63,910 nt of DNA from Pocillopora damicornis (GCF_003704095.1 NW_020845049.1:62001-125910), one strand, 5' to 3'. Positions 34,136 to 62,836 are shown, numbered from the stretch's first letter. Numbers and translations are program-made. The notes: a model not told the origin generated them from the sequence alone.

Positions 34136-36382
34136 TTATCTCCTTGACATTTCCTCCACAAATACACGTGTGTTTTCCTCCATTGGCGTCCACACGTCGT
34201 CTCCTCGATTGAACGGCGGTTTTTGTTGCATCCAGACACGGTACCATTCCACAGGATCCACACGCGCCGCTAATGGATCTCGTACCAAACGATGATAGTT
34301 GCGCTCATAATTGCGAAGCGTGGCTTGCACAAAAACCTTTTGTGCCACCATGTCCACAGCGTCTGAGAAAAATCTGATGGAGCAAGGAAACACCATTTAG
34401 TATAAGTAAACGATATAAGTTAACTGGAACCTCTACTAGTCTGCAGAGAGAGAAACTTTTTCTTTCTCCAGCCCAAAGTACCTGAACGTTGTTTGATTAA
34501 CTCATTTGAAACCCGTGCATTTTGTAAAGTTGTAAGACCTGAGAACACGAGACATTCTAGCCTTTTTTGAGGATTCATTCGTGAAACTCTGCTAAGCAGG
34601 ATTATTTTGAAAGACTTTCAAAACAGAGTGGATTGTGTACCTGTTCAGATGAACACATTCTTGGCATGACGGACCATAAAGGGCAGCGTACTTCATGAAT
34701 ATAGCGTCGACACGCGCCACTAGATCATTATTGTAAGTGCTGAAGTATTCAAGCATGTGCCTTCGCTCCTTCAATTTCTTTTTCCTCTCGGCCTCCTCAG
34801 CTGTGCCAAACACAGATGGCATGTTGCTGCAACCCCAACTAGAAATGCGGTTCTGAAGGGAATTAGTCCACTGTCCCAAGTGGCTAAATGCGTTGGAGAT
34901 CATGACAAGCGGACTGCTACTTGAGTAGTCAAATGGAGCACTGCGCCACGAAGGAATCAGATTCTGGTCCCAACTAACGAAGAATTCATCGCCATCAAGA
35001 TCACCTCCCGCAGATTCGTCGGCGTGTGGTCGCCTTCCCTTCGTCGGAAACACGATGCAATCGCTGAGATATGCGTACTCTGGTTGGTTCTTGATAAGCT
35101 TTAGAACACGGATGTCACCCGGATGATAGCATGGATTTCGCACGACTATGACTTCTTCAGCCCTTTGAAAACCTTCCATCTGCTCCTCGTCAAAGAGAGT
35201 GGGTTGAAAAACGCACTGGCCATATTCGAGGGATTGGAAGGGGTCACACACACCGAACACTACTCTCGATTTTGGAACTAAAACCCGCAGTTTACATCTT
35301 GAAGTCTGTGTCACACTGGATTCATCTTCATCGGCATTTTCTTTCTGCATCTTGCGAACCTCCTTTGCACGAAGAGCTTTAAGCTGTCTTTGAAGGCGAG
35401 GATTCTCCAGTCCAAAGTCATGCAGCCAACCGAGTAATTTTTGCTCTCCTTTGATACATAGATATGACTCGGCAGATTGTCTGGCGCTACAGAGTTCTCG
35501 AAGCATGATATGGAAATTATTCTGAAGCTGTCGCAGGTAGCTGTGTTTGACTCCACTGTCGGCCAACAACATCGTAATCTGCTTATTAAGGTAGCCCATG
35601 GTGTATGGCCGGGAACACTTTACAACACCAAACGTGGTACAACTCAGGCGCACTCGCTCATCTGGAATGCTAAACTTCTTCATGGACTTGCGGAATTGAA
35701 CCTGAACACCATCGTTTAACCGAGGATTAAGGACGAGGACGCCTTTAAAACCCTGGTACCTGACTTGTACCACACAAGGTTTGCTTTCAAGGTGACGGTG
35801 TACATCTTGAATTTCTTGCGCAAATGAATCTGACATAAAACCGCATCCGTCGGTGAAGATGTATTTTCCGCCCTTAATGTCATCGATGACATCGTATTGG
35901 GTGTCTTGCAGAATAGTGCTTTGGTCGAACGACGAGAACAAAAGCCCAATTCTCTTGGCGCGCTTAGCGGTTGTCTTGATTTGAGAAAACTCGCCAAACT
36001 GCGCAAGCAGCTCGTAAATGCCTTCATCCGAGTCATTCAATAGAAAACAAGTTCTCTCCTTAAGTTGAGAGTTGGAGTGGCCCAGGAAGCGGTAGATCTC
36101 GCCACTAAAAAGAATATTTCTTTTTAAGATGCTTTCCGAGAAGTCTTCGTCTCTGCCTCTTTCAGGACGAAAACCCACTGTCATTAGTCTGTCGACTCCT
36201 TGCGGACCTTGCACAGACATCAGGTATTCTAGGAAAAGGTTGCCTCCTCCCACTTTGTTGTACCTCATTGGCGGTCGCACCCGACCGCCGTGTATGTTAA
36301 AGTGTTTCACGTATATGGCCTTTTTTAAGTGGTCTTCGGGAGGAGTTGTTATCATCTCGGGTGGTATACAGTAGGGCTCCAT
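34136..36382 (-). CDS. Eukaryotic RNA-dependent RNA polymerase (RdRP/QDE-1 family), copy 1, catalytic DLDGD intact; exons 34641-36382 and 34136-34373 (659 aa)
   Basis: Motifs FLGHSNSQLKE, RIGLLFS, FTDGCG, QVRYQGFKG, GYLNKQI, RNPCYHPGD and GGDLDGDEFFVSWD (34988-35002). A GT-AG phase-2 intron at 34374-34640 joins to C..LNR/FFSDAVD; the spliced length of 1980 nt is in frame. Confidence 0.93.
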
Positions 36383-36703
36383 CGTGATTGTTTTCTGAAA
36401 ATTCGGAAAATTTATGTTTAATAGCTACATAGCCTTGTCACTTAAATAAAAAAATAAGTAATATTCCCTGCACTGTTTGGGTTTTGGCGAAATACTGGTC
36501 GCGTAATGGTTCATGCACGACTAGAGCTATTTTTATTCTCAACTTTTGAATGAACTCACTAAGAAGCTCTCAAGAATGAAAAAAAATTATATATATATAT
36601 ATANNNNNNNNNNNNNNNNNNNNNNNNNNNNNNNNNNNNNNNNNNNNNNNNNNNNNNNNNNNNNNNNNNNNNNNNNNNNNNNNNNNNNNNNNNNNNNNNN
36701 NNN

Positions 36704-60100: not shown

Positions 60101-60763
60101 CTTTACCACTGACATCTGACGTGACAAATTTCGGCTCCAGCGTGTCATTACTGATCCTTACTTTGATATAGTAAAACCTCTTGAAATTTTTGCTCAATCC
60201 AGCCGTAACGACAGGAAAATTTAATATCAAAACAACAGTCGAATGCTTTAAAGAGAAAACGGTGAATCCTTACAAACGCTAAGGCCAACTCATTCGTCTA
60301 AATTAATGTTTTGTCATACAAAGAGATATTCGTTTTATTGCACTCTCATTTTAAGACATTACTATCGATTTTTTCGACGACTGAGGTTATAATATCCAGC
60401 AAGAAATTCCTATGTATACTGTCTTTAAAACCCTATGATAGAAAATAAGGAAACTTTCAACAGTTCAGAGTATATCTTTTACGTTAATTGTATAGTTAGA
60501 TGATGATAGGCCGAGTAGAAACCGTTGCGTGACCATTCAGCGACGGTGTATGCGTGACCATCCAACAAAGGTGTAAGCACAGCAAGTTCATATCTGTAAC
60601 GCAACTTCTTTTTTCTCAAAAATAGTTTTGCAAGAAAAAAAGGTATGGTAATGTATTGTTAAGAGTAGTTATGATTGGGTCGCTATAACAAGTAAACGGC
60701 TCTTATGAGCCACCTCCAATGAAGTGGATGTAGAAAACTGCCGTCATTAACTCTCCCTGAAAT

Positions 60764-62836
60764 TTACACGACGATCTTCCTCATTTCACGCTGCATACGG
60801 TGAACAAATTCCTTGGCTTTGTCGTCAATCTTTTGCCATATTTTAATACCACGGTGACAGGAATCTCCTGCGCTACCTTCGCATGCAGTCGTCGCGGACA
60901 TTGTGTTGTGTCTGAGTGACTGCCGCTCCTCGAAATCCTCTTCGTCGAGTGATGAATCCAAACTTGCCGCTAAACTTGTAGACCGACTTCCGGTAAGGCT
61001 CACTTGCCTTCTTGACGGTCCACTGATTGTGCTTAGCTCATGCTCTGTCTCCGGATTTTCATATGCATGCTGTGGCTCGTGGTCAATTGGTAGACCTGTG
61101 CTCTTTCCTGAGGGTATCTTAGGCTTTATGCTGTTGAGCTCTTCCTGCAAATCCTGAAGATCCTCTCCAGGGATGGTAACTTGGTACAACATCTTGCTGA
61201 GATGTCGAAATTCTTTTGATGAGAGGCTCGATGTCGTTGCACATTGCAAGTATGCCTGTTCGATCTCTTTGCTTATTTGATCAGAATATGTGGCAAAATA
61301 CAGCTCCATTTCCTTTCTGTCTTCCACTCCTTTGCTTGGGTTGGTTCTCTTGAATTTCGAGGCAACTTTGGAGACAATGTGAGCCACAGCTGGGGAAATT
61401 TTAGCTTTAATGGAGGGCGAATAGTTGCATGGTTTCTCTTCTCCACTCGGAAGGATGCTTTGATCCCAGCTGACGAAGAATTTTTTTCCGCTCAGGTCAC
61501 CTCCGAAACATTCAAACGCATGGGGACGTGGGCCTTTGACGGGCAACACCAGACAATCCTTCAGTTTCTCGTACCCTTTTCTTTTGTCAGTCATTTTCAA
61601 CACACGCACATCTCCTGGATGATAACATTGGCTTCGCATTACTACAAACTTCTGGCCGGCAGTAAAATCTCGTGCCTTGTTACCAGGAAGAGTGGGATTG
61701 AAGTAGCACTCACCATAGTTCAACTTGTTGAGAGGATCACACACGGCAAATACTTCGCGAGATTTGGGGACAAGAACTCTTGTGTACGTAGCTATCTCCA
61801 TTTCTTCCAGCTCGCGCTTCTGTAAACGCTTAAGTTCCCTTTTTGTGCGACCGTCAATTCCGTTGTCTTGGATTACTTGCAAAAGATAAATTTCTCCCAT
61901 TAACATTAGGAAGTACTCAGAGTCAGAGGTTCCTTTGTTTATGCCTTCCAACAACTCATGGTAGTCATCTTGTAAGGCCTCAAGACTCTGGGCAGAAACA
62001 CCACGTTCTTCAAGCAACATGATCATTCGAGAGTTAAGATAACCATTGGTGAATGGGCGTGAATAACCGATAACATTGACGATGTTAAAAACGTCAGGCT
62101 TTTCTCCATCAGGATCCAGGAACTTTTGCATTGATTTGTGGAACTGCACTTTAATACCACTCAGATCTTCTTTAAGAATTAGCATGCCCTCTATTCCTCG
62201 ATAGCGTACGTGGACGGCGCTAGGCTGGTAATCAAGACCTAAGACTTCTTGCACTTCGGAAGCGAATCTTAAAGACATGAAACCACATCCATCGGTGAAA
62301 GTGTGCGAGGGGAAAACTCCATCTGTCACATCTGGTTCGACCTTGAAATAATTTTCATCTAAGTGGACAGTTTTTATTAATGGTGAAAAGAGCATGGCGA
62401 TTTTGCTGGCACGCTTTGCCACATTTTTCTCACCAGAAAAGTCTCCAAACTTTGACAAGAGGTCGTGGATTTCTTCATGTGTTGCTGCAATAAAGTAACA
62501 AGATTTTTTCGCAAGCTGCTCATCCGAGTGACCAAGGTAGATGTATGGGCGCTGACGACAAAATATCCCCCTTTCCAAAACGCTTCGGCAGAAGTTATTT
62601 GCAACTTCGACAGGCGTGATATTAAAAGTCAGCTTCATGAGATTTTCGTGAAAGTCAGGCCCATCACGTTGTCTCAGGTATTCTGTCAGCATGGTGCTTT
62701 TGAGCTTTTCATACTCAACGTTATAGTCCTTTTTACCATTGCCATGGAATTGTACATGAATTAGGAGGGCATCATCTCTGGTGGTCTCTGCTAGCCTAGG
62801 AACGTCTGGCACTTCTATGCAGAAATTAAAGGCCAT
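60764..62836 (-). CDS. RdRP-like protein, copy 4, catalytically degenerate (DLSGK); single coding exon, 690 aa
   Basis: YLGHSDEQL, FTDGCGFMS, GYLNSRM and YHPGD are retained. DLSGK lies at 61484-61498, with HVRYRGIEG. There is a Ser/acidic C-terminal insertion. Confidence 0.9.
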   Translation of the reverse strand: MAFNFCIEVPDVPRLAETTRDDALLIHVQFHGNGKKDYNVEYEKLKSTMLTEYLRQRDGPDFHENLMKLTFNITPVEVANNFCRSVLERGIFCRQRPYIYLGHSDEQLAKKSCYFIAATHEEIHDLLSKFGDFSGEKNVAKRASKIAMLFSPLIKTVHLDENYFKVEPDVTDGVFPSHTFTDGCGFMSLRFASEVQEVLGLDYQPSAVHVRYRGIEGMLILKEDLSGIKVQFHKSMQKFLDPDGEKPDVFNIVNVIGYSRPFTNGYLNSRMIMLLEERGVSAQSLEALQDDYHELLEGINKGTSDSEYFLMLMGEIYLLQVIQDNGIDGRTKRELKRLQKRELEEMEIATYTRVLVPKSREVFAVCDPLNKLNYGECYFNPTLPGNKARDFTAGQKFVVMRSQCYHPGDVRVLKMTDKRKGYEKLKDCLVLPVKGPRPHAFECFGGDLSGKKFFVSWDQSILPSGEEKPCNYSPSIKAKISPAVAHIVSKVASKFKRTNPSKGVEDRKEMELYFATYSDQISKEIEQAYLQCATTSSLSSKEFRHLSKMLYQVTIPGEDLQDLQEELNSIKPKIPSGKSTGLPIDHEPQHAYENPETEHELSTISGPSRRQVSLTGSRSTSLAASLDSSLDEEDFEERQSLRHNTMSATTACEGSAGDSCHRGIKIWQKIDDKAKEFVHRMQREMRKIVV

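Follow-up and report, generated by a model that had tools for sequence, protein, structure and literature searches.

Intact and catalytically degenerate RNA-dependent RNA polymerase genes form an old cluster in the coral Pocillopora damicornis, suggesting a non-catalytic role for part of the family

A 63,910-bp stretch of the genome of the coral Pocillopora damicornis (C1684:62001-125910, hereafter the window; 39% GC, four 100-N gaps, from an assembly of 234 Mb) carries, across positions 34136-62836, four minus-strand genes of the cellular RNA-dependent RNA polymerase (RdRP) family. Two of these genes, which we call c1 and c2, retain the aspartate triad of the catalytic site (live copies), and the other two, c3 and c4, have lost it (dead copies). 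We believe that the locus is probably an old enzyme/pseudoenzyme cluster, in which a dead lineage that has kept the fold but lost the triad is expressed, held by selection and multiplied in tandem, and performs a non-catalytic role. In corals and sea anemones, the cellular RdRP family may thus have a so far undescribed, non-catalytic function. Pseudoenzymes that partner active paralogues, such as pseudokinases, keep their fold, lose catalysis, are selected and expressed, and are often paired with a live paralogue. The coral dead copies have lost catalytic residues with the fold (as predicted) kept, are under purifying selection across species and, for c3, are expressed; the analogy with pseudoenzyme partners serves only as a working model.

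The Pfam RdRP profile PF05183 was run on long open reading frames (ORFs) with a cut-off of 23.8 bits, and all four copies in the window match it at 264-331 bits:

34592-36382, minus strand: c1 ORF, PF05183 E 3.1e-98
47926-49731, minus strand: c2 ORF, PF05183 E 1.8e-98
53113-55056, minus strand: c3 ORF, PF05183 E 6.6e-84
60764-62836, minus strand: c4 ORF, PF05183 E 3.1e-78

An earlier note on this DNA had proposed four same-strand RdRP-family genes within about 29 kb, forming two sequence pairs, with DLDGD in copies 1 and 2 and DLSGE or DLSGK in copies 3 and 4. This description holds for the window. The profile matches range from E 1e-78 to 1e-98, all on the minus strand, each motif has been located at exact coordinates (given with the gene models below), and identity is 74% between c1 and c2 and 58-60% between c3 and c4, as against 37-40% across the pairs. 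The outer limits are set by the final base of the c1 stop codon, in the second coding exon (34136), and by the A of the c4 ATG (62836).

With the triad lost and both fold and descent kept, c3 (DLSGE) and c4 (DLSGK) belong to the RdRP family, although not as enzymes. Among long RdRP representatives drawn at 50% identity from the whole family, 83 of 86 keep DxDGD, and in RDR2 either D834G or the conversion of DGD to AAA abolishes activity, with G833E being a loss-of-function allele (PMC8713982). When columns that are at least 85% conserved across 122 long active RdRPs are used as a reference, the short live clade retains nearly all of them. Both c1 and c2 keep every near-invariant residue, and by this sequence criterion the two are probably active as polymerases. 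In the dead clade, replacements affect a particular subset (R144, Q206, K213, R231, N266, G377, N416, F445, D463 and D465 in c1 numbering), and its structural glycines, prolines, tryptophan and hydrophobic positions are 85-100% kept. Six positions (R144, Q206, K213, N416, D455 and D463) are identical in 8 of 8 short live sequences and replaced in the dead clades of both corals and anemones; all but D455 are likewise identical in 7 of 7 outgroup sequences, and D455 is in 6 of 7. An HMMER alignment to Arabidopsis RDR2 places K213 at K589 and R231 at R605, both in the first barrel, and by analogy with two-barrel polymerases in general these residues would contact nucleoside triphosphates (NTPs) or RNA. 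The changes in c3/c4 include K to E at the K589 equivalent (K213 is mostly E in corals), R to H at the R605 equivalent, R144 to K, Q206 to H and N416 to S.

Within the loop itself, most dead sequences keep the first Asp; the second is kept in 4% and the third in 21%. Across c3 and two of its orthologues, E, K or N stands in place of the third Asp between unchanged flanks, which indicates that the chemistry at this position is no longer constrained. Conversely, about 18 positions are conserved solely in the dead lineage, as would be expected of a new constraint more than of simple relaxation. From this pattern of residues, the dead proteins should be unable to polymerise RNA. One might still imagine that they catalyse nucleotidyl transfer, or some other reaction, through a non-canonical site, given that the first Asp is mostly kept and that two of the three are still present in some anemone sequences (NLDGD, DLSGD). 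We regard this proposal as highly improbable, because the second and third Asp are so seldom retained, close orthologues differ freely from one another at the former catalytic positions, the charge of the K589 equivalent is inverted, and the loops of two further copies described below (c6 and c7) have deletions of 4 and 9 residues. Single changes in this loop are also sufficient to abolish RDR2 activity (PMC8713982).

Retention of the fold is supported by structural modelling. The predicted model of c3 has a mean predicted local distance difference test (pLDDT) score of 85.4 and a predicted template modelling (pTM) score of 0.85, and it aligns by VIA-align with RDR2 (7roz) at Z 37.7 and a root mean square deviation (rmsd) of 4.3 over 539 residues, covering chain residues 275-970 of 1133, and with Neurospora QDE-1 at Z 33.0. 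Foldseek matches the same model to RDR2 and QDE-1 at E 5e-30 to 3e-23 with template modelling (TM) scores of 0.65-0.70. In the predicted structure the core of two double-psi beta-barrels is present, together with the slab, the bridge helix and a trigger-loop region. Since the match is limited to RDR2 residues 275-970, the N-terminal part with its RNA-recognition motif (RRM) and beta-barrel, as well as the head, appear to be missing from c3 (domain limits from PMC8713982). The sequence match to RDR2 begins only at residue 455, and neither the N-terminal RRM nor the C-terminal head is found. All members of the cluster, live ones included, are short (620-700 amino acids), whereas most relatives have 1000-2000. 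The model of P0106, a live orthologue, has a pLDDT of 87.1 with 93-98 in the Asp loop, and c3 falls below 50 at residues 440-444, just before the loop; the contrast is weak support because confidence follows alignment conservation. A protein atlas search returned generic RdRP clusters only.

The dead state is not local to this array but characterizes a large lineage that extends over stony corals and sea anemones. A search with c3 yielded at least 120 homologues of 477-719 amino acids among the matches listed, the best being a 624-amino-acid Stylophora protein with 89% identity. Among the same matches, the loop is degenerate in about 100, with its flanks conserved, and of the live form in 10. 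The degenerate loops read DLSGN, DLAGN, NLGGD, TLGGD or RVGGD, or contain deletions, and they come from Stylophora, Orbicella, Oculina, Desmophyllum, Exaiptasia, Actinostola and many further samples. Using c1 and a dead copy of Exaiptasia as queries added live orthologues from Nematostella, Exaiptasia and Actinostola and dead copies from the latter two; the Nematostella protein (P0130) is an orthologue of c1/c2 with 63% identity and DLDGD. Sequences were aligned with MAFFT. In a tree of 189 rows, the short family is separate from the long (about 1000 amino acids) cnidarian and fungal RdRPs, and its 138 dead rows are explained by one change of state. After removal of the loop columns, a quick mixture-model IQ-TREE tree of 46 rows, with support from the Shimodaira-Hasegawa-like approximate likelihood ratio test (SH-aLRT), supports the live, anemone-dead and coral-dead clades at 96, 100 and 89, respectively, with the dead rows forming one side of a branch whose support is 70.8. 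We therefore favour, as the simplest reading of the sequences, one loss of catalysis before sea anemones and stony corals split, with two parallel losses being the other possibility. Under one loss or two, the tree makes each dead clade older than the families sampled. Furthermore, the c3/c4, c6 and c8 types each have their own orthologues elsewhere.

Although the earlier note viewed the locus as a four-gene module, a genome-wide profile search and inspection of the flank reveal that the array runs on past the end of the window, on the same contig (C1684:126012-150875) and in mixed orientation:

L013:102-728, minus strand: c4-like fragment, truncated by the assembly gap where the window ends
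L013:4723-6675, plus strand: c6, Asp loop with a 4-residue deletion
L016:4740-6418, minus strand: decayed c8-type pseudogene containing stops
L014:1340-3316, plus strand: c7, Asp loop with a 9-residue deletion, on a very long branch
L014:5788-7875, minus strand: c8, RVGGD

The profile scores of c6, c7 and c8 are 130-232 bits. The whole array thus comprises one pseudogene and, besides it, at least eight RdRP genes or gene fragments, dead copies outnumber live ones, and at least 5 of the 7 intact short-form genes in this coral are dead. The other RdRP loci where the motif was located (C3414, two on C2784, and C3056) all have DLDGD, and every dead copy of the genome therefore lies in one cluster, beside two short live copies. 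An origin of the dead copies from a transposon or virus was considered and rejected: they show no flanking repeats beyond coding similarity, occupy orthologous positions in three species and are nested in the cellular RdRP tree.

Live and dead copies are also linked on the contig of a related coral, in Stylophora and in Exaiptasia, where one live gene, which shares the C-terminal intron, stands head-to-head with three dead ones (NLAGS, NLDGD and DLARD) within 17 kb (LJWW01000008.1; L021:1-20747). In Actinostola two dead copies are adjacent, a third has the next locus tag, and a live copy is placed on a contig of equal length. The next neighbour of the Exaiptasia cluster is a gene for a DEAD-box/KH/zf-CCHC helicase.

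This linkage bears on how the dead proteins might act. Possibly, and we advance this tentatively, they act as partners to, or regulate, the live short RdRPs beside them or the complexes of these. Alternatively, they might work alone as RNA- or protein-binding factors (sensors, sequestering proteins or scaffolds), and the linkage would be a mere trace of tandem duplication, since tandem duplicates remain linked without any functional reason. The excess of dead over live copies, the existence of at least four old subfamilies (the c3/c4, c6, c7 and c8 types, each with its own orthologues) and the positions conserved solely in the dead lineage, which point to a new constraint, all speak for such independence. 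However, the adjacency of live and dead genes has persisted in both Scleractinia and Actiniaria, and the loss of basic residues from the cleft is a poor fit with polymerase-style RNA binding. On balance we judge stand-alone action to be rather unlikely.

Pairwise Nei-Gojobori estimates of the ratio of nonsynonymous to synonymous substitution (dN/dS), with bootstrap 95% intervals, reveal that the dead copies are under purifying selection and are not decaying:

c3 (dead) versus the Stylophora orthologue: dN/dS 0.21 (0.15-0.29)
c3 (dead) versus a second coral: dN/dS 0.18 (0.13-0.24)
c4 (dead) versus the Stylophora copy: dN/dS 0.51 (0.39-0.67)
c4 (dead) versus a second coral: dN/dS 0.31 (0.24-0.38)
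c2 (live) versus the Stylophora orthologue: dN/dS 0.21 (0.15-0.28)

Overall, values are 0.14-0.21 for c3, 0.30-0.51 for c4 and 0.15-0.22 for the live c2, and every bootstrap interval is below 1. These data also bear on the idea that dead RdRPs are decoys, which mimic the live ones and so capture viral proteins that suppress RNA silencing, with an arms race driving their turnover. A birth-and-death pattern is present (duplication in tandem, one truncated and one decayed copy, and lineage-specific duplicates), and c4 evolves faster, with dN/dS up to 0.51. However, all pairwise values are below 1 with no signal of positive selection, and c3 is as constrained as the live c2. Furthermore, we know of no coral virus suppressor that targets RdRPs. 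The decoy proposal thus seems very unlikely to us.

Transcription of c3 is directly supported by RNA data. Of the 31-mers of 47372-55056, about half are present in 18 RNA-type runs, a fraction close to the genic share. RNA contigs from four polyA or oligo-dT runs, produced by three studies, were compared with 49300-55299. In all four runs, contigs of 2.3-2.4 kb span 52056-54454 (the c3 ORF and 3' untranslated region, UTR), others reach 55032, and the spacer at 51200-52050 is almost empty. In three of the four, contigs break at an acceptor (55032-55031) and go on in letters that are unique to 59362-59388 or 58527-58556. Because the break falls at an AG and the distant exon ends at a GT or GC donor, the c3 mRNA is spliced and uses alternative 5' exons. 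The earlier note had allowed for copies 3 and 4 being neutral or silent; neither is neutral, given the dN/dS intervals, and c3 is not silent, being found as spliced polyA mRNA in three studies.

The possibility that the array is a scaffolding error or a haplotype duplication, with copies 3 and 4 as pseudogenes on their way out, can be given next to no weight. Its appeal comes from three gaps in the span, the truncated copy that abuts the gap at the window end, and the one true pseudogene of the extended array. The gaps within the span are as follows:

36604-36703: assembly gap, 222 nt upstream of the c1 ATG, outside the coding sequence (CDS), and probably in a c1 5'UTR intron, judging from c2
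41299-41398: assembly gap, c1-c2 spacer
46547-46646: assembly gap, c1-c2 spacer, about 725 nt downstream of the c2 stop

All coding exons are free of gaps, so that no reading frame had to be assumed, and the segment 46647-63910, which holds c2-c4, contains no N, in agreement with the earlier note. The order of c2 and c1 across the gaps depends on scaffolding, but the same order and strand recur on a 67-kb contig of a related coral, where a c4-like copy, a c3 orthologue and then three live-type copies lie on one strand with no N over the 21.9 kb examined (L018). The gene order in Stylophora pistillata also agrees with the scaffolded one. Paralogues in the array have diverged to a synonymous distance (dS) of 0.9-1.5, and at dS 0.94 c1 and c2 are not alleles. 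With the c3 and c4 ORFs intact and under purifying selection, and c3 transcribed and spliced, both artefact and decay are already contradicted by the gap-free sequence, gene order, selection and RNA results. The scaffolding artefact that the earlier note had named as a risk can accordingly be set aside.

Gene models for the four copies were built from these data, c1 and c2 being searched exon by exon and their exon joins checked for frame, with no internal stop found:

34641-36382, minus strand: c1 (live) coding exon 1; ATG at 36382, GT donor 34640-34639, DLDGD at 34988-35002
34374-34640, minus strand: c1 intron, 267 nt, GT-AG; spliced CDS of 659 amino acids
34136-34373, minus strand: c1 coding exon 2; stop 34138-34136; frame and splice sites checked
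50937 to about 51179, minus strand: c2 5'UTR exon, from RNA contigs
49744-50936, minus strand: c2 5'UTR intron, GT-AG; joint 49743/50937 in RNA contigs of 4 of 4 runs
47984-49731, minus strand: c2 (live) coding exon 1; PF05183, DLDGD at 48334-48348; 5' part covered by RNA contigs
47619-47983, minus strand: c2 coding intron, 365 nt, GT-AG; spliced CDS of 664 amino acids
47372-47618, minus strand: c2 coding exon 2; stop 47374-47372
59360-59388, minus strand: c3 5'UTR exon, 3' end; GT donor 59359-59358; RNA contig ends of runs X12 and X4, unique placement
58525-58556, minus strand: c3 alternative 5'UTR exon, 3' end; GC donor 58524-58523 (AG/GCAAGT, the slash marking the exon end); RNA contig end of run X1, unique placement
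54988-55030, minus strand: c3 coding exon, its 5'UTR portion; AG acceptor 55032-55031, RNA contigs stop at 55032
53113-54987, minus strand: c3 (dead) single coding exon, 624 amino acids; ATG at 54987, DLSGE at 53641-53655
52056-53112, minus strand: c3 3'UTR of about 1 kb, from RNA contigs
60764-62836, minus strand: c4 (dead) single coding exon, 690 amino acids; DLSGK at 61484-61498

The exon-1 ORFs of c1 and c2 diverge directly after 'NR' or 'TR' at the GT, and an AG followed by a C-terminal frame matching the orthologues lies further down. The exon-2 tail of c1 aligns with the C-termini of the full-length orthologues P0106 and P0107, and Exaiptasia P0134 has an intron in the same place as the c1 C-terminal intron. 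The 5'UTR introns of c3 measure about 3.5 and 4.3 kb and lie within the c3-c4 spacer. For c4, the sequence offers an AG at 62888-62887, about 50 nt before the ATG, which is likely to be a 5'UTR acceptor like that of c3. The public P. damicornis model pdam_00009603 (RMX47029.1; 2118 amino acids, 'RDRP core domain-containing protein') overlaps the cluster and appears to fuse several of its separate RdRP genes; contrary to this model, c2 and c3 are separate transcripts in the RNA contigs.

Other features of the region surround these genes. The c1-c2 spacer contains an 11-nt tandem repeat (unit about TTGACCGATAC) in two arrays, at 37458-37608 and 40779-40885, 3.2 kb apart, as well as an open frame with a PAN/Apple domain (44936-45406, minus strand; PF00024, E 1.5e-08) that probably represents either a fragment of a gene or one exon of an unrelated gene. 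Just downstream of c1, a coiled-coil-rich open frame of 329 codons (31098-32084, minus strand), with a CPGGC...H.C motif and no Pfam match, may belong to a gene that has not been annotated, as one of its exons.

Several observations weigh against our preferred reading of the cluster as live enzymes accompanied by selected, non-catalytic relatives. The short family, live members included, lacks a glycine at the apparent bridge-helix position (c1 residues about 550-560; RDR2 G886), which the long paralogue on C3414 keeps. This glycine is essential in RDR6, where G921D is a null allele (PMC8713982), and its absence from the live short forms makes the activity of c1 and c2 itself less than certain. 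The replacement of R144, K213 and, in most corals, R231 argues against binding of RNA or NTPs in the old active centre, and so weakens any role as a sensor of template. The live, anemone-dead and coral-dead clades meet at an unresolved three-way fork. The homologue searches yielded no dead-clade member from Nematostella, and the induction data from that species, discussed below, may thus concern live forms only. The RNA check covers c2 and c3, as assembled contigs that carry neither level nor strand. Finally, the motif GAAANNGAAAS, which resembles the interferon-stimulated response element (ISRE) and sites for interferon regulatory factors (IRFs), is not enriched in the window (6 occurrences versus 3.4 expected, a count reached by 9 of 100 shuffles), and this result gives no support for interferon-type regulation.

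Comparison with known systems places these observations in context. By sequence and predicted fold, the cluster belongs to the same family as Arabidopsis and maize RDR2 and Neurospora QDE-1, and c1 and c2 share DLDGD and the core residues with these enzymes. In contrast to RDR2 and QDE-1, the cluster members are without the N-terminal RRM/beta-barrel part and the head, and c3, c4, c6, c7 and c8 are without the Asp triad and other core residues. One of the two nearest precedents is found in Paramecium tetraurelia, where RDR3 and RDR4 are degenerate beside canonical paralogues, RDR4 having a 7-residue gap at DLDGD (PMC2896523) that resembles the deletions in c6 and c7. Although its catalytic domain has diverged, RDR3 is needed for small interfering RNA (siRNA) accumulation (PMC2896523), and a non-canonical RdRP can therefore be functional; two Paramecium RDRs have also been found to act jointly (PMC12876857). 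However, Paramecium is a ciliate, its paper says nothing of a cluster with live copies, and the coral and anemone lineage is a separate and much larger expansion. In Branchiostoma, the other near precedent, only 3 of 6 RdRP candidates keep the DbDGD site, and apparent domain truncations may, as its authors caution, reflect a defective proteome prediction (PMC6396948). For the candidates that lack an intact site, neither conservation nor selection nor clustering has been described, whereas the dead state analysed here is shared between orders, with complete ORFs. Our literature search, whose incomplete coverage makes an earlier description possible, found no conserved dead RdRP lineage and no enzyme/pseudoenzyme RdRP cluster described in cnidarians or other animals. 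The earlier note's statement that it knew of no such cluster in animals thus stands as far as the cluster itself is concerned, and needs qualification in view of the degenerate genes of Paramecium (PMC2896523) and the amphioxus candidates (PMC6396948). Taken as a whole, the interpretation offered in that note is partly supported.

What the dead proteins do might be approached through the responses of cnidarians to viral mimics. Nematostella vectensis, for which earlier work counted four RdRP genes, induces RdRPs upon exposure to poly(I:C) and cyclic GMP-AMP (cGAMP) (PMC8476169, PMC8713801), and secondary siRNAs were not detected in this species (PMC12768352). Induction without secondary siRNAs fits a role other than amplification. 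The Nematostella papers do not discuss catalytic residues. In Stylophora, eight RdRP homologue transcripts have been counted (PMC3962355), and heat together with viral activation raises the expression of an RdRP (PMC12530282). The patchy presence and unclear role of animal RdRPs have been described as an open puzzle, and these proteins may have roles beyond siRNA amplification (PMC6396948). We propose that the dead proteins could serve a non-catalytic role in the response to double-stranded RNA (dsRNA) or in antiviral RNA defence. Partnership with or regulation of live RdRPs ranks first in our estimation, followed by stand-alone binding, then decoy function and lastly residual catalysis. A more ambitious proposal, which we consider speculative and more doubtful than the existence of the pseudoenzyme cluster, is that hexacorals run an ancient enzyme/pseudoenzyme RdRP module, in which dead paralogues, expanded by birth and death beside one or two live minimal RdRPs, would be non-catalytic sensors or regulators of the dsRNA or antiviral response. 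If true, such a module would explain why RdRPs are induced by viral mimics without siRNA amplification.

To our knowledge, cellular RdRPs have been regarded as enzymes whose only known job is the synthesis of dsRNA or secondary siRNAs. A large and conserved lineage that is expressed (in the case of c3), unable to use the canonical site and genomically tied to live RdRPs would represent a second, non-catalytic mode of this family in animals. Counts of 'RdRP genes' in cnidarian genomes would accordingly overstate polymerase capacity. Given that Exaiptasia has the same arrangement of live and dead genes, the question is directly testable in that anemone. The cluster may also provide a lead on why sea anemones induce RdRP genes in response to dsRNA without amplifying siRNAs (PMC12768352).

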